64,000 nucleotides of DNA from Thecamonas trahens ATCC 50062 (lineage: Eukaryota > Protista > Apusomonadida): the NCBI RefSeq assembly GCF_000142905.1, contig NW_013657656.1:389308-453307 (forward strand), in the 5' to 3' direction. Shown here in pieces: positions 49,028 through 61,488 of the stretch. How positions within the stretch are numbered: the first letter of the stretch is position 1; each line of letters starts with the position of its first letter. The notes under the pieces were generated by a model that was not told the DNA's origin, searched no databases, and was given only the letters and a program-made list of their open reading frames with translations. Made by a program: the position numbers and the translations under genes.

Positions 49028-52000
49028 ATGTCTGAGGGGTTTCTGTCACGACTTGCGCATACGCATGCCTTGCCAGCTGAGGATGCGGTGCATGTGCTGC
49101 AACAGGAGCTGCATGACGTGGCCCATGCGTCGGAGGGAGGAGCCGGTGCCGCCATGCATGCGGCGTATGTGGCGGCTATGGTAGCAACAGCAAGGGCTGT
49201 GGCTACTGGGGGTATGACCGAGGTGGTGAGCGGGCTCTCGGTTCTCTACACCGACGTGGTCGACCCGTACGCCGCCCGGCTGGCCGCCATGGAGTCCGAG
49301 GCTGCCGACGAGCTCCGACTCGCCTTTGCCCACGCCATGCTCGATGTGGTGAGCACGAGCTTGCGGCCGCTGGCAGACGCCAAACCTGGGCTAGCGCCGG
49401 ATCTGCTGCGGCGGAGCAAGGCGATGCTGGAGCGTGCGCTCATGGTCACCATCTCGCTGGTCGACGAGCGGCCGGCCATGCGCGGCAGCGCGTCGCTACT
49501 GCTGCACGCCATTGGCGGCCTTGTGCACGCGCTTCTGGAGCATGCGCCCGAGGCGGCGCGACTGTCGATTCGGTATGCCACGGGCCACAGGCCGGCAATG
49601 GGCTACGCGACGTCGGCGCTCGCGCTTGACGACACGCACGCAGCGCGTGCGGCGGTGACACGGGCGTTGGCTACCTACGCACGGGCGGCGCTCATTGGCT
49701 CGACCGACGCGCTCATCTCGATTGTGGCGAGCGACCTCGCTCCGACGCTGCGCAATACTCCGGCAGCGCAGCAGGACGCGGCGAACCACTGGTTTCACCG
49801 CGCCCGAGTGCTCTACGGGGTCGGCCTCCACGAGCATGCCAAGACCGTGGCACACCACGTGGCGCAGTTTCTTGCCCGCCCCGGCCTGGCGGTTCCGGGC
49901 GGGTACGAGATGCGAGGCAAGGCCAAGGCGCTTTTCCATGCCGCCGTCGGCGTAGGCTCAGGCGGATCTGGGCATGGTGCATGCAGCGGGTCTGGCGAGC
50001 TTATTGAGGACGCCTCTGACTACCCGCATCTCTTTTTGCGGCTCCGCTATGCGGTGGGATGGGTGCGACACCTCATCTCTGGCCTCCTGCTCCTGCTTCC
50101 GCCATTGGAGGGCGTGCCGATGATGCTGGCAGACGATGCCGGGGTCGTCTACCCGCTGCCCGAAGAGCCGCCGCGCGGTCCGACTGACGCCTGTCCGATC
50201 CCGTCAGCGCTGTACAGCGCGTTTGTCAGTCACCTGCACGCCCACAAGCTGCTGCCGGACTCGCTCGGGCGAGTCAGGCAGGTGGTGAACTACCCGACCA
50301 TGGGCACGGCGACGAGCGAGGCGAGCTCAAGCACCGCCAGCGACCGCAGCGGCACCAGCGGCAACGACGACTCGGTGGTGCTGGTGAGCAAGGCGCTGTC
50401 GCCGGCAGAGCTTGCAGCGGCGGTGTTTGCAGCGCCCGAGACGCGCGCAACACTCGAGCTCGCATGTGCGGATCCGCTCTTCCCAGGCTTTACCACACTC
50501 CTGCACTTGCAGCACGCACTGATGCGTGCTCTGCTGGCACACATGTGGGGGCTGACGGACTTGGTCTCATCGACACCTACAGGCGGAGCGAGCCGCGGGA
50601 ACAGCAACGCCAAGACCGAGTACGCGTTTGTGGCGCTCGGCTCGTTTTCACGGATGGAAGCGTGCCCGTTCTCGGACCTCGACGCGATCCTGCTTGTGGA
50701 CCCGAACGCACCGCCGTCTTTCCGCGATGGGCTGGGCGCGCGTGCGAGGTTCTTTGAGCTCCTCGTCATGTCACTCGGCGAGACGCAGTTCCATGTTGTC
50801 AAGGACTGGCACCACCGCGACGTGTCGATCATCGAGTCCGGGTTTGACCTCGACGAGGCGCACCTCTCGCCGGTGCGGACCATTGTGACGCCTGACGAGC
50901 TCATCACGCTCCACGTCAACGCGGCGACCGAGCTGCTCAAGTACGAGTACGATAACGTCGACCCGTTTACGCACGCAGCGCGCGAGCCGTCGCTTGTCTT
51001 TGGATCGGCACGGGTGTTTGCCAGCTACCAGGCACAGCTGAAGCAGCTGTTCACGTCGGCGGCGGCCGACTTTTCGCCCGACGTCGAGGCTGCAGCTGAC
51101 GGGGTCTCACTCGGTGCTCTTTACGCCCTTACTACTCTAGACAAGAACACCGGTCCGGGATCGGCGTTTGCGCCGGTGCATCTCACAACGCGAAGCCGGG
51201 ACGAGCTCTCGATCAAAACCCACGCCATTCGGTTTGTGACCATGACCGTCGGTGCGCTCGCGCTCTACCTTGACGGCATGGGCATCGAGGTACCGGAGAC
51301 GGTGCTTCGGCTCCAACGACTGGCGCAGGCGCGTTTGATTCCGCCACGACTCGCCATCGAGCTCATCCGACTCCACGAGTGGCTGTTCCGGACACGGTTT
51401 GCGCTCCACCTCAGTGCCAGGCGCGAGAACGACGTGGTGAGCCGAGCGGCGCACGGGCCGACGGTGGCGGTGCTGGAAAAAGCCGCCTCACGCATTCTCA
51501 GCCCACTGTACGAGGCTGTACGCGCATTTGTGGCCAGCCGCGAGCCGCGGAACACCATTTCGTCGCTGGTTTACCTACGCGCCGCCGAGTTTTCGGCCCG
51601 GCTGGACGCGGTCTCGGACGTCATTGTGTCGGACGTGTTTGGCGAGGCCGAGGACGGGTCGTTTGATCGGCTCGAGCTGCTGCGATCGGTCGACGAGCTG
51701 GCGTTCATGGGAGTGCGACGTGGGGCGGCGATCCGCCGGCTCCATGCCGACGTAGGCGCGCTGCTCTTCCCAGGCAGCGACGGCGAGAGCCCTGACAGAG
51801 GAGCACCCAACGACGACAGCGAGGTGCCTGGGGTGGAGAGTTTTGGGCGAGCGCATGTAGTGTACGCGCGCGGCGTGCATTTCAAGCTCTACCCACTGCT
51901 GCCAGGCCATGAGATCTCGGTCTCGCTGCTTGCGCAGTCGCTTTTCTCCGAGTACACGCTCACGCCGCTGGTGGACGTGGCGGTTGTCCGGCACGGAGGA

Positions 52001-55000
52001 CGAGAGCATCTATTGCTGATGGGCGAGACCATCTCGCGGTTCAACATGCTCATGGCGCTGCAGACGTCACCGTCGGGCCAGCTGGTGACGGGCAACTCGG
52101 GCCTCCTCGAGGTGCTCCGCGGCACGATGGGCTTTGAGTTTGGCGTGCCGACGCTACCGGCGCCGTTTGCTCAGCTCGGGACAAGCAAGCGGCCACTGGA
52201 GCCGTCGACGAACCCGTCGATGGCGCGCGACGAGCGGATCTGCTTCCGGTCGGCCGACGGCGAGCTCGGCGTCAATGTTGCGCTTGACATGGAGCAGTAC
52301 TCGGCAGCGGTCCTTCTCGCGCTGTGCGTTAATCCGGAGGACGGCAAGCCGGACAATCATGTGGTGATGCTGAGCGAGGAGCTGCCACGTCGGGCGACGC
52401 CGATGGTCACCGAGGTTGCGGATGGGAAGCGAGCGGTGGTGACATACCGGGCTCAGGTGGTGTCTGTCGACAACGAGTACGGGTTTGTGGAGGCGACCAA
52501 GGCATCATGCCCGCAGGTCAAGTCAATTTACTTTTGCATGTCTGCGCTCTCACTTCCGGTCCCTGTCCACCTGCGCAAGGTGGTGACGCGGTGGGATGCG
52601 CGACACGCGCTTGCGTCGTGGCTGCAGCACCTGCAGGCGGCCGAGTGCGAGTTCAAGCACCTGGGTGCTGCAATCGGCGACGATGAGCTCGGAGTGCGGT
52701 TTGTGGCCGGCATTGTGCATGTCCTCTTCCACAAGCTGGCTCGACTGCGGCGAGCGCTGCAGATTGCGCGGGTGACTCACCGCGAGCTGCTGTTTCAAAT
52801 GGAGCGCGAGCTGGCGGAGCACTACCTGTCGGCGTTCAAGGACCCCAAGCTGGCGACGCCGATCGAGCGGATGCTCAAAATTGCGTCGTCCAACTACCAG
52901 CAGCGAACGGTGCTGACGAGCCTGCTGGCGACGGCGCGGCTGGTTGGGCTCTCGGTCCCGAGTGCGACGCCGGACCTTTCCGAGTTTGTCACGCTCACCT
53001 CTGCCGAGACGATCCGCAACTCTCAGGATCGGTTTGTGGCGAGTGGCGGGGCGGGCCCGTCGCAGACGACGTACGACTTTGCGGCTCTCGCTGCAGCGCG
53101 GCAGGATGTGCTGACTCATGGCAGCTCGTCGTCTGTGGCGACGCTTGTCGAGGCCGGGACGGCTGGTGAGCGTGTGGGGCCGGACGAGCTGCTCATCGAG
53201 CTTGAGCTCTTGCAAGAGGGCGAGAACGCACTGGAGGCACTCATCGAGCACGGCGACCTGCGCCCATTCCAGGCGCTACATCTACCGCAGTTCAAGGAGG
53301 CGGCGCTGAAGCGACTGCACCTCGACAAGCTGGGGGCGGAGCTGCAACGGTCGGTGCTCAAGGCGATCGACGGCACGCTCTTTGTCGAGCTGCACCTGCC
53401 GCGGTGCGGCGAGCTGAGCGACTCTGTGCTCAAGTCGATTGTGAGCAAGTGTCCGGCGCTGGTCGAGCTCAACGTGGCACACTGCTCGCGGATTGTGTCT
53501 GTGGGTAGCGTCGGCATCTATGCGCCGCTGCTGCAGGTGCTCGACGTTTCTCACACAAGCGTGACACTCAAGGCGCTGGACGGGATCGAGGCAAGCGCGC
53601 CACACCTTACGTGGCTGAACATAGAGGGCGTGGCGGCCATTGCCGACTCGCCGCGGCGTATTTTTCAGGCCTCACCAGGCTTGGTCTGGTCGCGGCTCCC
53701 ACTGCGGCTGCAGTACGGGCTCGTCCTGCTTCACGAGTGCGCACCGAGTGCACAGGCGAGCGGGGCGGTCGCGTCGCTTGGCAGCATTCCGCTGTTTGAG
53801 TTTTCAGCGGCGGCGCGAAAGCGGCGCAAGAAGCACGACAAAAAGGTGGTGGCGGCGCTGAAAGAGCGATGGCGGTCGATGGCGGCGTCGGGCTCGCGGT
53901 CGCGGTCGGGTTCGCTGCTCTCGTCGTCGTCGGCCGGCTCCTCTTTCATGGCATCGTTCAAGGCCTCGCTCTCGGCATCGTCATGCTCGTCGATGTCGTC
54001 GCTCGAGCCAAGTGTCGAAGTGAGTGAGAGCCAGCAGGTCCAGTTTTCGGTGGACCTCGGGCATCCGCCGATGGCGACGGCGGGGCTGGGCCTGCTTGAC
54101 CGCGAGACAGCGCTGGCGTCGTTTGTCATGCTTGTCGAGTTGGACCTGGTCAACACCGGGCTGCGGGTCCTCCACGCCTCGGTCCTCTGCGAGCTGCTCT
54201 GCGACGAGCGGATGCAACAGCTCCGCAAGCTCAACGTGTCGTGGAACGAGTTGGGAAACATAGGGACGTCGTTGCTGGCGCAGGTCTGGTCTAGCGCCGG
54301 GAGCCAGCGGAGCTTTGTTGGCTTGCAGGTCCTTGACATGCGGTTCAACGCCATCGACGATCACGGGTACGAAAACCTGGCGTCGATCCGCGAGCACGAG
54401 CCGCCGTCGTCGCCGCGGTACATCCTGTTTGACGAGCCGTACAGTCCGCGGCCGCGACTTCTCTCGCTCCATGCGTATGAGACAAGCGAGGCCGACTGGG
54501 AGCTGCTGGCGCGGGCGCGGAAGCAAAAGGTGTCGGCGATGGTGGTGCTTCGAACCGACGTGGTGGTTGTGGGCACACCATCGGGCGCAGTGTACGCATG
54601 GGACGTGCACTCTGGGAGCGAGCCGACCCTGGTAGCCAATCTCCACTCTGCCGTCCACGGGCTGCTCCAGCACCCGATGGACCGATCTCTTGTGGTGGCG
54701 ACGGCGAGCGGGGCGTTCCAGCTCGACGTGTGGTCGGGCGTGGAGCTCAACCGAATGGAGCTTCTTAGCGGAGTGGAGGCGCGCGTGGTGGCGTCGATAG
54801 GGCTGTGTGCGACCGCGGTCGGGTGCAGCGACGGCGTGGTCCGGTTTTGGGACACTGGATCGAACGAGGTGCTGAGCGAGCTGGATACCAAGGGCGGGGC
54901 GGTGACGGCGCTTACGCTGCTCGGCGACGGCACGCTCGCCATTGGATTCGAGTCGGGCACCGTCGAGATTGTGGAGCTCGCCGGCGGGCGCTGCGTGCTG

Positions 55001-55396
55001 AGCCTGACCAAGGGCCACCGTGCGGCGGTGACGAGCGTCACAGACATGGGCGACGGGCACGTGGTGAGCACCGGCGCAGACGGGCGAATGTTGGCGTGGG
55101 ATCTACGTCTTGTGGCACGGTCAACCACCCACCGGGTGGTGTTTGAGATGCGGCGGTCGGCGCCGGCAAGCGCTATTCGCGCAGCTATCCGCCTTCCAGA
55201 CGGTGCGCTCTTTGCGGTTGCCACGCAGCACTCGCAGCAGTCGCTCCACCTTGTCGACATCGACGGCGGGCTCGTCGCTACGTTTGAGGGCGAGCTGACC
55301 CGGTCGGTGTCGGCCATCGGCATGCTCCCGACAGGCGAGCTAGTGACGGCTGCGCGCGGTGGGTGGATGTGTGTCTGGAGGGCGACGAGTGTGTAG
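49028..55396 (+). CDS. Multidomain protein: helical N-terminus, GlnD/DUF294-type nucleotidyltransferase + substrate-binding domain, HipA/PI4K-like kinase, LRRs, WD40 propeller
   Basis: ALGSFSRMEACPFSDLDAILLV (GS...DxD). IKTHAIRF...TVLRLQRL...LFRTRFALH. VHFKLYPLLPGHE, NPEDGKPDNHVV and VSVDNEYGF. LRRs LVELNVAHC and LRKLNVSWNELGNIG. WD repeats DGVVRFWD, GHRAAVTSV and DGRMLAWD. Uninterrupted 2122-aa ORF. Confidence 0.85.
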   Translation: MSEGFLSRLAHTHALPAEDAVHVLQQELHDVAHASEGGAGAAMHAAYVAAMVATARAVATGGMTEVVSGLSVLYTDVVDPYAARLAAMESEAADELRLAFAHAMLDVVSTSLRPLADAKPGLAPDLLRRSKAMLERALMVTISLVDERPAMRGSASLLLHAIGGLVHALLEHAPEAARLSIRYATGHRPAMGYATSALALDDTHAARAAVTRALATYARAALIGSTDALISIVASDLAPTLRNTPAAQQDAANHWFHRARVLYGVGLHEHAKTVAHHVAQFLARPGLAVPGGYEMRGKAKALFHAAVGVGSGGSGHGACSGSGELIEDASDYPHLFLRLRYAVGWVRHLISGLLLLLPPLEGVPMMLADDAGVVYPLPEEPPRGPTDACPIPSALYSAFVSHLHAHKLLPDSLGRVRQVVNYPTMGTATSEASSSTASDRSGTSGNDDSVVLVSKALSPAELAAAVFAAPETRATLELACADPLFPGFTTLLHLQHALMRALLAHMWGLTDLVSSTPTGGASRGNSNAKTEYAFVALGSFSRMEACPFSDLDAILLVDPNAPPSFRDGLGARARFFELLVMSLGETQFHVVKDWHHRDVSIIESGFDLDEAHLSPVRTIVTPDELITLHVNAATELLKYEYDNVDPFTHAAREPSLVFGSARVFASYQAQLKQLFTSAAADFSPDVEAAADGVSLGALYALTTLDKNTGPGSAFAPVHLTTRSRDELSIKTHAIRFVTMTVGALALYLDGMGIEVPETVLRLQRLAQARLIPPRLAIELIRLHEWLFRTRFALHLSARRENDVVSRAAHGPTVAVLEKAASRILSPLYEAVRAFVASREPRNTISSLVYLRAAEFSARLDAVSDVIVSDVFGEAEDGSFDRLELLRSVDELAFMGVRRGAAIRRLHADVGALLFPGSDGESPDRGAPNDDSEVPGVESFGRAHVVYARGVHFKLYPLLPGHEISVSLLAQSLFSEYTLTPLVDVAVVRHGGREHLLLMGETISRFNMLMALQTSPSGQLVTGNSGLLEVLRGTMGFEFGVPTLPAPFAQLGTSKRPLEPSTNPSMARDERICFRSADGELGVNVALDMEQYSAAVLLALCVNPEDGKPDNHVVMLSEELPRRATPMVTEVADGKRAVVTYRAQVVSVDNEYGFVEATKASCPQVKSIYFCMSALSLPVPVHLRKVVTRWDARHALASWLQHLQAAECEFKHLGAAIGDDELGVRFVAGIVHVLFHKLARLRRALQIARVTHRELLFQMERELAEHYLSAFKDPKLATPIERMLKIASSNYQQRTVLTSLLATARLVGLSVPSATPDLSEFVTLTSAETIRNSQDRFVASGGAGPSQTTYDFAALAAARQDVLTHGSSSSVATLVEAGTAGERVGPDELLIELELLQEGENALEALIEHGDLRPFQALHLPQFKEAALKRLHLDKLGAELQRSVLKAIDGTLFVELHLPRCGELSDSVLKSIVSKCPALVELNVAHCSRIVSVGSVGIYAPLLQVLDVSHTSVTLKALDGIEASAPHLTWLNIEGVAAIADSPRRIFQASPGLVWSRLPLRLQYGLVLLHECAPSAQASGAVASLGSIPLFEFSAAARKRRKKHDKKVVAALKERWRSMAASGSRSRSGSLLSSSSAGSSFMASFKASLSASSCSSMSSLEPSVEVSESQQVQFSVDLGHPPMATAGLGLLDRETALASFVMLVELDLVNTGLRVLHASVLCELLCDERMQQLRKLNVSWNELGNIGTSLLAQVWSSAGSQRSFVGLQVLDMRFNAIDDHGYENLASIREHEPPSSPRYILFDEPYSPRPRLLSLHAYETSEADWELLARARKQKVSAMVVLRTDVVVVGTPSGAVYAWDVHSGSEPTLVANLHSAVHGLLQHPMDRSLVVATASGAFQLDVWSGVELNRMELLSGVEARVVASIGLCATAVGCSDGVVRFWDTGSNEVLSELDTKGGAVTALTLLGDGTLAIGFESGTVEIVELAGGRCVLSLTKGHRAAVTSVTDMGDGHVVSTGADGRMLAWDLRLVARSTTHRVVFEMRRSAPASAIRAAIRLPDGALFAVATQHSQQSLHLVDIDGGLVATFEGELTRSVSAIGMLPTGELVTAARGGWMCVWRATSV

Positions 55397-55599: not shown

Positions 55600-58500
55600 T
55601 CAGAGCGAGCCGACGACGACCGAGACGGCGTAGGCGAGCATGGCGACGATGACGACAATAACAGTGGCGGCGAGGGATTCGATTGTTGATGCGGCGGTGG
55701 CGGCGTCCATCATGGACACCATGCGGAGGACGACGAGGGTGGCGACGAGCGAGGCGGTCTCGAGCTGCATGGCTCGGCTATCGCTCAGCGGGTGCCAACG
55801 GAGGTGGGCTCCAAGGGCGAGCGCCACCACAGCCGCAAGCCCGCCGCCTACAAACACCGAGTCGTGGGGAACGACGGCCGAGATGGTGGCGATGGCCACG
55901 CGGCGGGCAAAAATGACGCCTTCGAACCACCACACCTGCGACCGGAAGGCCTCCCAGAGAAAAGCCAGCGGGTGATGATGGCTGTGGCCACCCGACCGAT
56001 GCTCGCCTGTGCTGTCCAGCAGCGGCAGCGTGTGCTCGGCTTCGTCGTGGCCACCATCGCGCTCGACAGCGATAGCGGTGCGTGCGATGGTGATTGCGAC
56101 GGTGACAAGGGCGGCAATCGCAAGGAGGACGGTGAGAGCCGAGGCGATCAGGGCAATGTGCTCGCGCGAGCCGCAGGCAACCCACGGCACCGAGTCGAGG
56201 TACGACGCGTGGACGCCCGGAGTCGGGTCGGGGACGCAGGAGAAGTAGGCCAGTGATCGCTGGATGAGAGGAAAGACGAAGAGGTAGCCAAGAGTGCCTG
56301 CAGCGAGGTCCGCACGACGGCGATTTCCGGCGTAGTCGGGGACGAGGCGAAGAACAAGGCAGACGACGACAGGGCCGGCGGTGAGGAGGACAAAGACCCA
56401 AAACTGGCCGAGCTGGTGGGCACCGATGCACCCGATGCCGGTAAGGGTGAGGCTCGCCCGCTCGAGCATGTTGCGGGTGGTGGCGAGCGAGGACGAGGCG
56501 CTGTCGGCAGCGGCTGTCGAGCCAAGGACGACCGAGAGGGTCTGAAGGAAGACGACCATGGTCTTGAGTGCTGCTTCTGCCTGCTCTGCCTTGTTTGGCT
56601 TGTCGATGATGGTGTAGAGGGTGAGGGCGATGAGGGCGCAGGCGATGGCCACCACCTCCCAGGCCTCGGCGAGGCCAAAGACCGCCAGCAGGACGCAGAT
56701 ACCGGCCTCGAGTGCTAGCGACGCCACCACGGTCTTGACTTTGCCCGTCTGCGCCTTCAGCCGCACCCACAGTGTGCTGCTATTGGCTAGTGCGATCTGG
56801 ATGGAGCCGTGGCGCGAGCGACGGCTGCTGCCGCGCGGCGTGAGGATGTAGGCGGCGAGGAGGATGACGACGATGACGCCGAGGGCCGCGAGAACGACGA
56901 TGGTACCGGTGGCAGTGAGCTTGCAGCGGATACACTTTCCGAGCCCAGCGCCCGGGGCGAACCAGCCTGGGGCGCATCGGGCGCAGAGGCGGTCCTCAGT
57001 GCCGTCGATACAGGCCCCGTCGCCAATACAGGCCTCAGGCTCGGGGCAGTGGAGAAAGAAGCCCGGGTTCCCAGTGGGAGTGTAACCCTCGCGAGCACGC
57101 GGGCGTGCGATGCCGCCGTGGCACTCGCCGCCGGGTGGGCAGACGACACAGGCAGCGACCGGAACGGCGGGCGACCAGAACTCGGGCTCGCATCCACAGC
57201 CAAGGGAGCCATCGGCGGCGAGCGGCATGAGCTCGGCGTTGGCGGCGCAGAGGCAGACGAGTCCACCTGAAGGCTGGCGGACCGGCGGACGGCCGCCCGG
57301 GCACGAGGCGAGGCGGATGACGATGGGCGTCGATTCGATGTAGCTCTTCGCTTGCGAGACCTTGAGCACGGCGGTGACGACCACGTCAGTGTCGAGAACG
57401 GTGTGATCTGTGGCGGCGAGGGCGAGCGAGGCGAGCGAAGTGACGTTGGCGGTGGTGGAGACGGCCACGTCAGGCGAACCGCCGTAGGTGGTCACGCTAC
57501 TCGGGAGCACGAGCGAGATAAGCAGCGCGTTGTCGGTGATGACATTACCTACGGCGTCGTAGATGGCCAGCGCAAAGCGCGGCGCGAGCGGGATGCCCGA
57601 GACGACGGTGGAGCCGTTGAGGGCAGCTATGCCGGCGGCCCACTCGAGGCGAATCGGCGACGATGCGAGGCTACCGCCCCAGGTGAGCGAGGTGGAGGTA
57701 GCGCCGAGAGCAGCAAGAGTAGAGGGCGGAGCGATGACAAAGTCTGCGAGTGTGATGGTAGCTGACGCATTGTGCGGCGGGCAGGCCATGGCGACCGAGC
57801 CTGCCGACGACGCCGAGTTGCCTGAGCCCGCGACTGGTCCTGTGACGGAGAATGAGGCGCCGCAGGCAAAGACCAGGCTGCCGTAGACAGCACGATTGGC
57901 TATCAAGACGGCGCCGTCGAGGACCAACTCGGTGGCGCGGATGTCGCGGAAGTGCGGGAGGGCGATGGGAAGGAAGTTGCTCTGGTAGCCGACGCCGTCG
58001 AGTACTGTCCGGGAAGCAACACCGAGCACGCCACCGAGAATGGCGAAGTTGCCGACATAGGTGTTGTCGGTGGCGACGAGGCGGGCGCCCGGAACCAAAG
58101 CAAAGACGCCGCCCCAGATGGATGCGGCAGTGGCTTCGACTACCGTGCCCGAGACGGAGATGTTGACGCCGTGGCCATCGGCGGCGATGAAGCCACCAGC
58201 GACCGACGCTAGCGAGTTCTTCACCCGCGATGCAGTGATGGACACCTTCGCGTGGCTACCCACCGCAAAAGTGGCGCCGTTGGGGGCCTGGTTGTTGGAG
58301 AGGTACGAGTTGGAGACAATGACTGACGACGGACTTGTCGCCGAGCTGGAGACGGCGTAAACGACGCCGCCCGAGGCCGAGGCCGAGCAGTAGGATATCG
58401 ACGAGTTGCGGATGACTACGGTCCCGCCGTCGAGCACCAGTGCCATGCCGCCGTAGCCCACTCCGAGCGAGCGGATAGAAGAAGTGAGGGTGCCGCTGTT

Positions 58501-61488
58501 GAAGAAGGCATCGACAGTTGTGTTGTGGAGCTCGAGCCTGGCGTCGATACCGGCGATTCGCAGCGGGGCCGCGCCGTTGATAGCGGCGATGGACGAGGCC
58601 CCGCTGAGCGCGAGCGAGGTCAACGTGAGGTCGATGCCCTGCGCGACGTCAAAAACAACGCCGCCAGCGGAGGAGCAGGCGATGCCTGCAGACGGCGCGT
58701 CGCCAAGGAGAACACCCGAGCGCGAGGGCGCGAGATGTCGCGAGGTTGGACAGCCGGTGAATGAGGAGGTGACGACGGCAGTGGTGACAGCGCAGCGGGA
58801 GAAGCGAGACATGGCGAGGGCGAGGCAGGCAAAGGAGGCCGGCGAGGCACATGCGGCGGTGTTTGGCGGGACGGCGACAAAGGTGTCCGGGAACGGATCG
58901 TCCAGCCAGGGCGACGGCAGGTGGAGAAAGAGGTCAAACGACGGCCCATCTTGAGCGAAGCCGACCAAGAGCAGATCGAGCCATCCGTTGCCGTCAAAGT
59001 CGCTGAGGGCAAGGCTGATGGTGTTGGGGAGGATGAGATGTGTGGCAGCGGAGACGACAAAGGAAGCCGCAAAGGTAGCGTTGGCTCCATGCGACGGCCA
59101 GACGACAACAATGTCTTTGCAGAGGGCGATGATGTCGTTGCCGAGCCAGTTCCGTGGGTCGACGAGGAGCATGTCGACGACGGCGCAGTCAAGGCCGGTG
59201 TGCGCGAGCGAGGGCGGAAGGGTGAGGATGCGCTGCAGCGGAGAGGATCGCGCTTGCGAGGAGAGGAGGACACGGACGCGAAAGTCCCCGCCTGGCGCAA
59301 GTGCTTGCTCCAGAATGGCAATGTCGTCGAGCGGGTCAGAGCCGGGCATGGGCGGGTCGAGCGGACCGGCGGCGAGTCCGATGACGGAGCCTGTGGCTGG
59401 CGCGAGCGAGGATGACGACCAGGTGAGGCCTGGCGTGCCCGGGTTGGAGACGAGGACGATAGCATTAGAGATTGGGTCGGCGACGACGACGTCTGCGGTG
59501 CCAGGGCGGGAGCCTGCAATACGCGCGACGACAATGGCGGAGACAGCGATGGGACTGAGATCGACGCCAAGGTCGACAGGGGTGACGACTAGGCGCGATG
59601 GATCCATGACCGGCGCGGCAACTCGCAGCAGTGCAAGCGAGTAGAGTGGAAAGGTGTGGGCGAGTAAGAGGGTCTCGATGGGAGCATTATAGAAGAGGCG
59701 GCCAGGAATAGCGGTGGCGTCGAGGAGGGTGTCGAGCTGTTTGATGGCGACAGGGGCGGCGAAGACGCCGTGGCCGAGGTTGGCAGCGTACAGAAGAGCA
59801 CCGGGTCTGGTATCGATGGCGCTGATGGCGACGAGGAGGTCGACAACCGCGTCACCGGTAAGATCAACAAGGGCGATGGCGGCGTCGCTGATGGAAGAGA
59901 TGGCATCCTGGACAAGTGAAGGACCTGTAATGCAGCGGAAGGGCGCATCTTGAGACAAGTCATGGAGCGTGTTGATGCAGGTAAAGATGCCAAAGCCAAA
60001 TGTGAGACCGACAAGGTCGGGCTCAGTGTCGGCGTCGACAAGACCGACGACGACGGCTGAAGTGGAGGTGGGGATCTTGGCCGCAGCGAGATCGGATGGG
60101 AGGAGGAGAGGGATGGGTGAGAGGAGCGGCGGCGGAACAACAGCGTGGAGGTGAAGCACGTAGCCAATGTGCTGAGCGACGATACACTGGACGGCGAGGA
60201 GCGACGGGACGGCGGACGTAGTGGTGAGCGAAGCGGGGAGAACGGCAAAGGCCGGCGGCGACATCATCGTCGCATCGGATTGGTGGATGACAACGAGGGA
60301 GGAGAGAGTGCGGATGCGTGGGCGGGTTTCGGGAGCGGAGATGACGTCAAACGTGAAGACAACCGGGGCGGCAGAGTCTGTAAAGACGCCGGCGACAGTG
60401 GCAAAGGCAAAGGTAGTGGTGTACGGACGCGGGGAGCGCCAGGGTGCGAGGGCGATGGGTGCGGAGAACGAGCCAAAGTTGTTGTTGTTGATCGAGGCGA
60501 CGATGACTGGAACGAGCGAGGCGGGCAGGGGGGACATGAGAATGGCAGCGAGGAAGCCCGTCGACGGATCGGAGCTCGCGATGCCGCCGACGACCAGATC
60601 AAGGGCTCCGTCACTATCGAGATCGGCAACAGTGAGCGAGGTGATGGTTGCAGCCGAGAAGGCAGCCGGCCAGGAAATTGGGAGCATCGGCGGAGGATGC
60701 GCCAGTGGAAGAGCAACAATGGTGAGCGTGTTTCCAAGGCCGACGGCGACAGAGGCCGGGCCCATCGCAGCGACGATGGTGCCGGAGAAGAGCGAAGACT
60801 CTGCAGTGTCAGGCAGGACGGTGAAGGAGAGTGAAGGAGGGGCAGGAAGCGGCGAGGCCAAGTGGAGCGCAACCAAGTGGATACCAACGGGGTCGGTGAC
60901 AGAGTGGCGGAAGACCAGATAGAGACCATCGGCGTTGTCAGCGACGACGGCGGCGGCCCAGTGGTAGTACTGCGGATCACACGAGACGAGGACGTCGTTT
61001 GCGGCATGGCTCCCGAGGAGCAGGGTGGGAGGCGTATCAAAAACAAGCGGATCGGGCGAGCCAGGATAGAGCCACAACGAGCCATTGGTTGGTACGGCGG
61101 TGGTAGCCATGGCGATGACGATGTCGAGGTAGTCATCGTCGTCGACGTGGGCGAGGAGAAGCGGGCCGAAGAGCATGTTGGTTGTGTCCGGCGAGGTAAT
61201 GACTATGTGAGATGACGGTGTGGATGATGATGATGACGATGATGACGATGAGAGAGAATGTGCGGTGACGTATGACACGTATGGACAGTATGCGATGGGT
61301 GCATGTGGTGAAGGCACGCAAGTGGAGAGCGCCGTAAAGGTGGCGGTGGGAAGGGCAAGGGAAAGCGGCGTGGCAGGTGTGGTGGTGTTAGCTGGTGAAG
61401 TGGAGCATGGCGGGAGGGGCGTGGAGGTGGCGGATGCGATGGCGTGAGTGAGGGTGAGGATGAGGATGAGGGCGAGGAGAGGGGGCAT
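55600..61488 (-). CDS. Cell-surface receptor-like protein: FG-GAP repeats, beta-helix (Pmp-like) repeats, Cys-rich stalk, ~11-TM module
   Basis: Signal peptide. DDDDYLDI, ADLDSDGALDLVVG, DLTGDAVVDLLV and DFDGNGWLDLLL. GG(V/F)(V/I/F) plus N.A repeats. CIDGTEDRLCARC stalk. TM motifs AFLWEAFR..WWFE and PL....MQLE. Confidence 0.88.
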   Translation of the reverse strand: MPPLLALILILTLTHAIASATSTPLPPCSTSPANTTTPATPLSLALPTATFTALSTCVPSPHAPIAYCPYVSYVTAHSLSSSSSSSSSSTPSSHIVITSPDTTNMLFGPLLLAHVDDDDYLDIVIAMATTAVPTNGSLWLYPGSPDPLVFDTPPTLLLGSHAANDVLVSCDPQYYHWAAAVVADNADGLYLVFRHSVTDPVGIHLVALHLASPLPAPPSLSFTVLPDTAESSLFSGTIVAAMGPASVAVGLGNTLTIVALPLAHPPPMLPISWPAAFSAATITSLTVADLDSDGALDLVVGGIASSDPSTGFLAAILMSPLPASLVPVIVASINNNNFGSFSAPIALAPWRSPRPYTTTFAFATVAGVFTDSAAPVVFTFDVISAPETRPRIRTLSSLVVIHQSDATMMSPPAFAVLPASLTTTSAVPSLLAVQCIVAQHIGYVLHLHAVVPPPLLSPIPLLLPSDLAAAKIPTSTSAVVVGLVDADTEPDLVGLTFGFGIFTCINTLHDLSQDAPFRCITGPSLVQDAISSISDAAIALVDLTGDAVVDLLVAISAIDTRPGALLYAANLGHGVFAAPVAIKQLDTLLDATAIPGRLFYNAPIETLLLAHTFPLYSLALLRVAAPVMDPSRLVVTPVDLGVDLSPIAVSAIVVARIAGSRPGTADVVVADPISNAIVLVSNPGTPGLTWSSSSLAPATGSVIGLAAGPLDPPMPGSDPLDDIAILEQALAPGGDFRVRVLLSSQARSSPLQRILTLPPSLAHTGLDCAVVDMLLVDPRNWLGNDIIALCKDIVVVWPSHGANATFAASFVVSAATHLILPNTISLALSDFDGNGWLDLLLVGFAQDGPSFDLFLHLPSPWLDDPFPDTFVAVPPNTAACASPASFACLALAMSRFSRCAVTTAVVTSSFTGCPTSRHLAPSRSGVLLGDAPSAGIACSSAGGVVFDVAQGIDLTLTSLALSGASSIAAINGAAPLRIAGIDARLELHNTTVDAFFNSGTLTSSIRSLGVGYGGMALVLDGGTVVIRNSSISYCSASASGGVVYAVSSSATSPSSVIVSNSYLSNNQAPNGATFAVGSHAKVSITASRVKNSLASVAGGFIAADGHGVNISVSGTVVEATAASIWGGVFALVPGARLVATDNTYVGNFAILGGVLGVASRTVLDGVGYQSNFLPIALPHFRDIRATELVLDGAVLIANRAVYGSLVFACGASFSVTGPVAGSGNSASSAGSVAMACPPHNASATITLADFVIAPPSTLAALGATSTSLTWGGSLASSPIRLEWAAGIAALNGSTVVSGIPLAPRFALAIYDAVGNVITDNALLISLVLPSSVTTYGGSPDVAVSTTANVTSLASLALAATDHTVLDTDVVVTAVLKVSQAKSYIESTPIVIRLASCPGGRPPVRQPSGGLVCLCAANAELMPLAADGSLGCGCEPEFWSPAVPVAACVVCPPGGECHGGIARPRAREGYTPTGNPGFFLHCPEPEACIGDGACIDGTEDRLCARCAPGWFAPGAGLGKCIRCKLTATGTIVVLAALGVIVVILLAAYILTPRGSSRRSRHGSIQIALANSSTLWVRLKAQTGKVKTVVASLALEAGICVLLAVFGLAEAWEVVAIACALIALTLYTIIDKPNKAEQAEAALKTMVVFLQTLSVVLGSTAAADSASSSLATTRNMLERASLTLTGIGCIGAHQLGQFWVFVLLTAGPVVVCLVLRLVPDYAGNRRRADLAAGTLGYLFVFPLIQRSLAYFSCVPDPTPGVHASYLDSVPWVACGSREHIALIASALTVLLAIAALVTVAITIARTAIAVERDGGHDEAEHTLPLLDSTGEHRSGGHSHHHPLAFLWEAFRSQVWWFEGVIFARRVAIATISAVVPHDSVFVGGGLAAVVALALGAHLRWHPLSDSRAMQLETASLVATLVVLRMVSMMDAATAASTIESLAATVIVVIVAMLAYAVSVVVGSL

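Follow-up and report, generated by a model that had tools for sequence, protein, structure and literature searches.

A Thecamonas trahens protein combining a predicted DrrA/GlnE/GlnD-type nucleotidyltransferase with a PI4KII-like kinase domain found in protist-dwelling bacteria

Nucleotidyltransferases (NTases) of the GlnE and DrrA types are bacterial, and the characterised members GlnE, GlnD and DrrA all take AMP or UMP from a nucleoside triphosphate and attach it to the hydroxyl group of a tyrosine in the protein that they modify. Type II phosphatidylinositol 4-kinases (PI4KII), leucine-rich repeats (LRRs) and WD40 propellers are typical of eukaryotes. In Legionella, DrrA AMPylates Rab1, and LepB, AnkK and MavQ are reported to be phosphoinositide kinases (PMC9758233); LepB is also a GTPase-activating protein for Rab1 (PMC3674391). 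Here we describe AMSG_05709, a gene of the apusomonad flagellate Thecamonas trahens ATCC 50062 whose product carries an NTase and a PI4KII-like kinase domain ahead of LRRs and a WD40 propeller. The gene lies in a stretch of 64,000 nucleotides of contig NW_013657656.1 (forward-strand positions 389,308 to 453,307), referred to below as the window.

The NTase domain possesses a complete catalytic set, comprising G538-S539, D550-L-D552 and a third carboxylate, D609, in the motif G-F-D-L-D-E. The first two elements conform to the Pol-beta motif hG[GS]-x9-13-D-h-[DE]-h. The G-S pair, the D-x-D and the third aspartate are kept in four Thecamonas paralogs and in the bacterial fusion proteins, with an aspartate in the D609 column of eight of the nine aligned sequences. 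Among Pfam families, PF10335 (DUF294_C) matched with 27.6 bits (cut-off 22.5) and PF08335 (GlnD_UR_UTase) with 21.2 bits (cut-off 21), which identified the helical substrate-binding domain immediately C-terminal to the NTase core. PF03445 (DUF294 core) reached 18.1 bits, below its cut-off of 21, and 36.3 and 27.1 bits in aligning paralogs; SidM_N gave a faint match at the NTase motif. When a profile of the paralogous NTases was compared with the PDB, it retrieved DrrA/SidM (6yx5_B, E 1.2e-7), the alignment spanning the G-S...D-x-D core and the helical domain. An AlphaFold model based on nine sequences (predicted local distance difference test, pLDDT, 75; predicted template modelling score, pTM, 0.77) superposed on the same DrrA structure with a VIA Z of 25.2 over 285 residues (root mean square deviation, rmsd, 3.5), and on the GlnE halves 3k7d and 1v4a with Z of 20.2 and 19.0. 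The next structural class, formed by aminoglycoside NTases and MNT antitoxins, gave Z of about 8 or less. Based on this model we assign the domain as an intact DrrA/GlnE/GlnD-type NTase and predict that it is active.

The kinase domain matched no family in Pfam (2025 copy), NCBIfam (2026), PADLOC or PDB sequence searches; the ZapA and rubredoxin entries returned from the PDB in searches with this piece and with a four-sequence profile were rejected as chance matches. Word-based protein searches with the kinase and NTase regions, which are too insensitive here, found one bacterial match besides the query itself. The structural model of the kinase (pLDDT 71, pTM 0.74, with a low-confidence insert at about aa 1010-1085) was more informative. 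PI4KII alpha and beta came out on top in Foldseek with probability 1.0, and VIA aligned the model with nine PI4KII alpha/beta entries at Z 16.5-15.7 over 227-233 residues (rmsd ~3.4-3.5). Lower VIA matches were CotH (11.7), CtkA (11.1), Vps34 and PI4KIII-beta (~10.7) and HipA (9.5). The key residues, numbered as domain positions plus 929, are K953 in the motif HFK, the catalytic loop D1105-G-K-P-D-N1110 and D1148-N1149, the equivalent of the PI4KII IDN motif. In 18 diverse members of the kinase family there is no variation at E1104, D1109, D1148, N1149 and a number of hydrophobic positions, and almost none at K953, N1102, D1105 and N1110.

Thecamonas also has a separate, orthodox PI4KII (locus L053) with the motifs GVFKP, NTDRGSDNWLV and AAIDNSLAFP, for which the AMSG_05709 counterparts are HFKLYP, NPEDGKPDNHVV and VSVDNEYGF. 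A profile of 235 domains of the family aligned with this PI4KII in hhalign at E 2.7e-4, from the catalytic loop across the IDN motif and on through the C-lobe. The reference residues of PI4KII alpha are the ATP-binding Lys152, a catalytic loop spanning 308-315, and Asp346 (PMC3974213). D1105...N1110 and D1148 were aligned to the Thecamonas PI4KII, and K953 was paired with Lys152 by motif and position only. According to the model, the domain has the fold and catalytic equipment of a PI4KII-related kinase that falls outside PF00454 by profile.

Several results weigh against this assignment. PF00454 (PI3_PI4_kinase) did not match the domain at E<5, while 17 other Thecamonas loci do match it, and one quarter of the kinase model lies below pLDDT 50. 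The hhalign probability of the alignment to the Thecamonas PI4KII was just 42%, and the four-sequence kinase profile gave no significant alignment to it (probability 0.5). The palmitoylation insert CCPCC of PI4KII was not found in aa 930-1328. Also, position D+2 of the catalytic loop is a lysine. This gives the D-x-K-x-x-N pattern seen in Ser/Thr protein kinases (D-L-K-P-E-N), where PI4KII has D-R-G-N-D-N, and makes protein and lipid substrates equally plausible. Kinase-fold enzymes can moreover perform other chemistry, such as AMPylation by SelO and glutamylation by SidJ. The link to PI4KII is a structural one, drawn from the model, and its sequence support is weak.

The two enzyme domains are flanked by regions of different character. 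No Pfam family matched aa 1-489 at E<5, and neither BLAST nor phmmer found a relative of this region, even among the paralogs or 150 family members. By BLAST, the first LRR block (aa 1383-1568) matches the paralogs and other family proteins (P0002, P0076, P0138 and others), and PF23622 matches it at E 4.7e-4. In a comparison of a family profile (18 sequences) with the PDB, FBXL2 (6o60_C) was retrieved at 6e-35 as the LRR drowned out the kinase signal. By these alignments, the kinase and the first LRR block are a conserved unit in the bacterial relatives. PF13516 (LRR_6) matched the second LRR block with 27.4 bits, over its cut-off. The WD40 region was recognised by many beta-propeller families of Pfam (best E 6.9e-13), PF00400 itself reaching 25.1 bits against a cut-off of 27.

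An earlier reading of the DNA alone (the original prediction) had proposed a single polypeptide made of an intact GlnD/GlnE-like protein NTase, a HipA/PI4K-like kinase, LRRs and WD40. Much of this was borne out: the frame is continuous, each motif was located at the position assigned to it, both enzyme folds could be assigned by modelling and structure comparison, and the LRR and WD40 modules are present by Pfam. The NTase has its catalytic carboxylates, with DrrA as the closest structure. For the kinase, the PI4K likeness with intact catalytic residues stands (Z 16.5), and the HipA likeness proved only distant (Z 9.5), so that a HipA-like kinase was rejected as the primary class. We hold the domain identities and the family membership given here with high confidence.

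To define the kinase family, a profile of four Thecamonas kinase domains was searched against 1.84 billion cluster representatives. The search returned 1377 clusters (50% identity) with E<=1e-3, of which 355 reached E<=1e-30, and AMSG_05709 scored 468 bits. Giant proteins from protist-dwelling bacteria make up most of the family. Its members are mostly 1000-5000 residues long and many contain two to four copies of the kinase domain. They share the motifs HFK...PELPG.E, NPEDGK.DN and (I/V)DN(D/E)..F, followed by Cys-containing LRR, all of which are found in AMSG_05709. Partner domains include LRR, HEAT/Arm, ankyrin, TIR, Sel1, Tox-ODYAM1 and WD40. The named genomes with the kinase domain are metagenome-assembled genomes of Chlamydiae, Dependentiae, Paracaedibacteraceae and Caedimonas, and Candidatus Paracaedibacter symbiosus has it too, as do unclassified Alpha- and Gammaproteobacteria. 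A patatin-LRR gene and Tra genes of type IV secretion lie next to one member. Of the bacterial members P0010 and P0007, one ends in Tox-ODYAM1, the Odyssella/Amoebophilus toxin domain, and the other has HEAT repeats followed by TIR, so that some bacteria join the kinase module to overt conflict domains.

An NTase lies upstream of the kinase in nine of the best 150 family matches, three of the nine being Thecamonas proteins. The nearest relative, P0137, has the NTase-kinase arrangement, and the eukaryotic contig that encodes it also carries genes for an EBP sterol isomerase and a CEP76-like protein. P0138, of 2161 residues, has the order NTase, kinase, LRR, WD40 and lies in a bacterial rpsB-tsf / dnaK context; the adjoining EF-Ts is 68-72% identical to those of Parachlamydiaceae and Protochlamydia. 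The other NTase-kinase proteins are P0114 (bacterial, with hipBA and moxR-batA neighbours), P0076 (bacterial, with insertion sequence elements and a PIN gene nearby), P0148 (with LRR and ankyrin repeats) and P0087 (on a eukaryote-like contig). Outside Thecamonas, at least two eukaryotic contigs carry the NTase-kinase-WD40 core. The kinase occurs without an NTase in a transcript of the malawimonad Gefionella and in P0151, whose eukaryotic contig of 274 kb also bears a coronin gene. Going by domain order, the NTase-kinase-LRR-WD40 architecture is shared beyond Thecamonas and recurs in a Parachlamydiaceae-like bacterium. This agrees with the expectation that domains of this kind are present in intracellular bacteria associated with amoebae, for which Chlamydiae, Dependentiae, Paracaedibacteraceae and Caedimonas are examples and the Parachlamydiaceae-like protein the best full-architecture match. 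The architecture is not unique to Thecamonas, given the same order in a bacterium and the NTase-kinase-WD40 core on other eukaryotic contigs.

In the NTase of P0087 (L057:2461-3813), S-N-V-K replaces S-D-L-D and the third carboxylate is gone as well, with the kinase motifs retained; this NTase is probably inactive judging by these substitutions. Same-strand Pkinase ORF fragments lie directly upstream of P0087 and P0151 (L057:669-1625 and L060:5848-7786), and the real genes may perhaps be of the type Pkinase-(NTase)-PI4KII-like-WD40 with introns, echoing the Thecamonas C6b paralog.

The relationships of 49 kinase domains were analysed in an unrooted IQ-TREE phylogeny in which most rows are without taxonomy. 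The Thecamonas domains C24 (that of AMSG_05709), C12 and C6a cluster with P0137 (support 99), and in a loose grouping (81) they are joined by the chlamydia-like P0114 and P0138 along with Gefionella, Thecamonas C3 and P0127. P0087 and P0061, both of eukaryotic context, cluster with the bacterial P0076 (support 100). A single clade of all eukaryote-context kinase domains, two rows of which are eukaryotic by contig context only, was rejected by the approximately unbiased test (p 0.0006, an optimistic value as the group was chosen after the first tree). As far as these sequences tell, members of the family moved across the boundary of bacteria and eukaryotes at least two times. Transfer in either direction, or a chimeric history, is possible, and a domesticated endosymbiont effector, as the original prediction had it, would correspond to one of the two possible directions; the tree points to exchange and has no root.

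The tree also bears on copy number. Bacterial members, such as P0002 (L023:10001-15679) and many other matches, usually have two tandem kinase-like copies. The first copies of these two-copy proteins form their own clade (support 100), and first and second copies are separate deep clades, the outcome of an ancient duplication. Every eukaryotic member and every NTase-fused one is single-copy and groups with the second-copy side.

Within Thecamonas, the same NTase domain is present in four further proteins, two of which pass the DUF294 cut-off, and the same kinase domain in three others. In total, at least five further paralogs are found on other contigs, with a mutual identity of only 28-46%, and the expansion within this lineage is therefore old. 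These proteins include paralogs with swapped partner domains; the original prediction had proposed a search for paralogs with swapped sensors. On contig C6, two paralogs lie ~13 kb apart at 537523-543243(+) and 556439-561715(-) (L014, L010). One combines a canonical Pkinase with a DUF294 NTase and is without the PI4KII-like domain; the other combines an NTase with a PI4KII-like kinase, LRR and WD40. The ATG-started ORF of the latter begins within the NTase; in the NCBI model (P0005, 2479 aa) it is extended upstream by ~720 residues. On contig C3, P0004 (L015:30-6560) contains a PI4KII-like kinase at aa ~1050-1400 of its 2176-aa ORF, before LRR_6, and no NTase. It is annotated as 'ribonuclease inhibitor', a name that overlooks the enzyme domain.

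Conservation of the module order between bacteria and eukaryotes argues for parts that act jointly. On balance we favour the explanation that AMSG_05709 is a two-enzyme modifying protein with LRR/WD40 scaffolds, and we think it likely that both enzymes are active. In this scheme the LRR and WD40 parts would bind or localise the target, bringing a substrate or membrane to both enzymes; the NTase would nucleotidylate a small GTPase or another regulatory protein, and the kinase would phosphorylate a phosphoinositide, possibly a protein. By analogy with Legionella, the likeliest field would be membrane identity and trafficking, and a role specifically on the Rab/phosphoinositide axis is put forward only tentatively. 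A bolder idea, which we consider rather unlikely, is that the AMPylase and the PI4KII-like kinase make up an unrecognised toolkit for rewriting membrane identity, through Rab nucleotidylation and phosphoinositide phosphorylation, that has been traded repeatedly between free-living protists and intracellular bacteria. The flagellate copies would then be either original regulators stolen by symbionts or captured effectors used against invaders, and the kinase would found a large new branch of PI3/PI4-kinases.

The same parts can be read as a ligand-gated innate-immune sensor-effector, in which the LRR and WD40 modules sense a microbial ligand and switch on the enzymes, the whole being a domesticated endosymbiont effector directed against intracellular bacteria. 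This was the direction taken by the original prediction, and C-terminal LRR and WD40 are typical sensor parts of NLR-like proteins. Relatives are also abundant in protist endosymbionts, some bacterial members carry TIR or toxin domains, and the family is expanded and domain-shuffled in Thecamonas. However, scans of the whole protein and its pieces with Pfam, NCBIfam and PADLOC revealed no NACHT, NB-ARC, AAA+ or other STAND/switch NTPase, and no PADLOC match was obtained, so neither ligand gating nor an immune role gained support. LRR and WD40 modules serve just as commonly as plain scaffolds, LRRK2 and the FBXL proteins being examples, and the trees are compatible with transfer in either direction. 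We regard an immune sensor-effector as distinctly unlikely. Comparably improbable, in our view, is a kinase-like domain without phosphotransfer, either a pseudokinase scaffold or an enzyme of other chemistry (AMPylation, glutamylation). SelO, with its kinase fold and AMPylation chemistry, illustrates the latter. Effectors with atypical kinase folds often catalyse reactions of another kind, as SidJ does (PMC6858067). No canonical glycine-rich loop is visible in AMSG_05709, and the lost NTase carboxylates of P0087 demonstrate that erosion occurs within the family. Against this, the lysine, catalytic aspartate, asparagine and metal-binding aspartate, invariant or nearly so in the 18 diverse members, are all present in AMSG_05709.

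Bacterial contamination, or a very recent non-functional insertion, was considered as most relatives are bacterial and the ORF is without introns. The gene lies inside a 453 kb contig (assembly size 28.7 Mb), however, and its GC content of 0.63-0.66 equals that of the flanks. The paralogs on at least five other contigs are too divergent from one another (28-46% identity) for a recent arrival, and the nearest relative, P0137, is itself on a eukaryotic contig, beside the sterol isomerase and CEP76-like genes. Contamination is thus extremely unlikely. Because of the long contig, the even GC with its neighbours and the paralogs on at least five contigs, AMSG_05709 is a nuclear gene of Thecamonas trahens.

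The two-enzyme protein that we favour is encoded by an intact ORF of 2122 codons, 49028-55396(+), with no internal stop (Table 1). At about 64% GC, ~0.027 stops are expected per codon, and an open run of this length is therefore not due to chance. Division into two separate genes was rejected, given the continuous ORF and the same domain order in a bacterium. Residues 1-2110 are identical to the NCBI model AMSG_05709, which is named 'uncharacterized' by NCBI and 'DUF294 domain-containing' in UniRef; only the last 5-12 residues are changed in the NCBI model. At window positions 55363-55396 that model ends in ...AARAFTGL, and the open frame instead reads ...AARGGWMCVWRATSV followed by the stop. 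The latter resembles a final WD-repeat strand, so the unspliced reading looks better than the NCBI model, and the annotated 3' splice may be spurious, judging from the translation. No signal peptide, transmembrane segment or switch NTPase was seen in the product, which would be one large, probably cytosolic protein. A convergent neighbour, 200 bp downstream (55600-61488(-)), encodes 1962 residues with FG-GAP repeats and DUF7630; no link to AMSG_05709 was seen.

Table 1. Location of AMSG_05709 and its domains and motifs in the window.
Feature	Position	Strand	Basis
Whole gene AMSG_05709	49028..55396	+	intact 2122-codon ORF, no intron needed
N-terminal region, ~490 residues, Ala/Leu-rich	49028..50494	+	without detectable relatives
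DrrA/GlnE/GlnD-type (DUF294) NTase core and helical DUF294_C, aa 490-846	50495..51565	+	Pfam, paralog profile, fold model
G538-S539 of NTase	50639	+	motif read
S549-D-L-D552 of NTase	50672	+	motif read
PI4KII-like kinase domain, unnamed family, aa 930-1328	51815..53011	+	fold model, Foldseek, VIA, hhalign
HFK motif with K953	51878	+	motif read
NPEDGKPDN catalytic loop	52331	+	motif read
SVDNEYGF motif	52463	+	motif read
Post-kinase linker and Cys-containing FBXL-type LRR block, aa 1383-1568	53174..53731	+	BLAST, profile, PF23622
Ser-rich low-complexity linker with basic KRRKKHDKK patch	53732..54115	+	translation and composition; no family match
Second LRR block, RNI/LRR_6 type, aa 1697-1790	54116..54397	+	PF13516 on excised piece
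C-terminal WD40 beta-propeller, aa 1825-2122	54500..55393	+	beta-propeller Pfam families

The enzyme classes involved are known; the kinase family and the AMPylase-kinase fusion are undescribed in the resources searched. Neither Pfam nor NCBIfam has a model for this kinase domain, which was found in >1,300 sequence clusters. Full-text literature searches found no paper on the family or the fusion, and gave only a note on the DUF294 domain of NEX2 (PMC4209131) and a Legionella pan-kinome survey. In protist-dwelling bacteria (Chlamydiae, Dependentiae, Holosporales-like alphaproteobacteria) the family is a mark of the proteome. It is also present in nuclear genomes of deep-branching flagellates, and represents a concrete case of repeated host-symbiont gene exchange. 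If the enzymes act as their folds suggest, AMSG_05709 would provide a compact system for AMPylation-phosphoinositide coupling outside Legionella. A family model for the kinase domain would let thousands of 'hypothetical' giant proteins be annotated.

The closest described counterparts of the NTase are the AMPylation domain of DrrA/SidM and E. coli GlnE/GlnD, with which it has in common a fold of ~285 residues (NTase core plus helical domain) and the catalytic set, at an identity of only 16%. DrrA has GEF (guanine nucleotide exchange factor) and P4M domains and GlnD has ACT and HD domains, all of which are missing from the Thecamonas protein. Unlike in DrrA, GlnE or GlnD, the NTase adjoins a kinase inside a 2122-residue eukaryotic protein. 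The kinase itself resembles PI4K2A and PI4K2B in the FK(P) lysine strand, the D-x3-D-N loop, the I/V-D-N motif followed by AF, and the alignable C-lobe helices. It differs from them in its loop, D-G-K-P-D-N rather than D-R-G-N-D-N, and in lacking the CCPCC insert, and identity is about 13%. A language-model feature search listed LepB_N clusters (0.93); LepB_N gave no Pfam match on AMSG_05709, and LepB, AnkK and MavQ were not among the top structural matches. These three Legionella proteins have atypical kinase folds acting on host phosphoinositides (PMC9758233), and we treat the link to them as a lead only.

At the level of architecture, the Neochlamydia NEX2 family of amoeba symbionts also has a DUF294 NTase within large, repeat-bearing 'eukaryote-like' proteins of Parachlamydiaceae (PMC4209131). 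NEX2 proteins are described as combining F-box, sometimes OTU, DUF294 and TPR with no kinase domain, and are set apart from AMSG_05709 by this published description (PMC4209131). LRRK2 and the ROCO proteins are likewise giant signalling proteins combining LRR, a kinase and a C-terminal WD40 propeller. However, LRRK2 contains a Roc-COR GTPase switch and a canonical protein kinase in the order LRR-Roc-COR-kinase-WD40, whereas AMSG_05709, with no GTPase, places a PI4KII-like kinase ahead of its LRRs and adds a predicted AMPylase.

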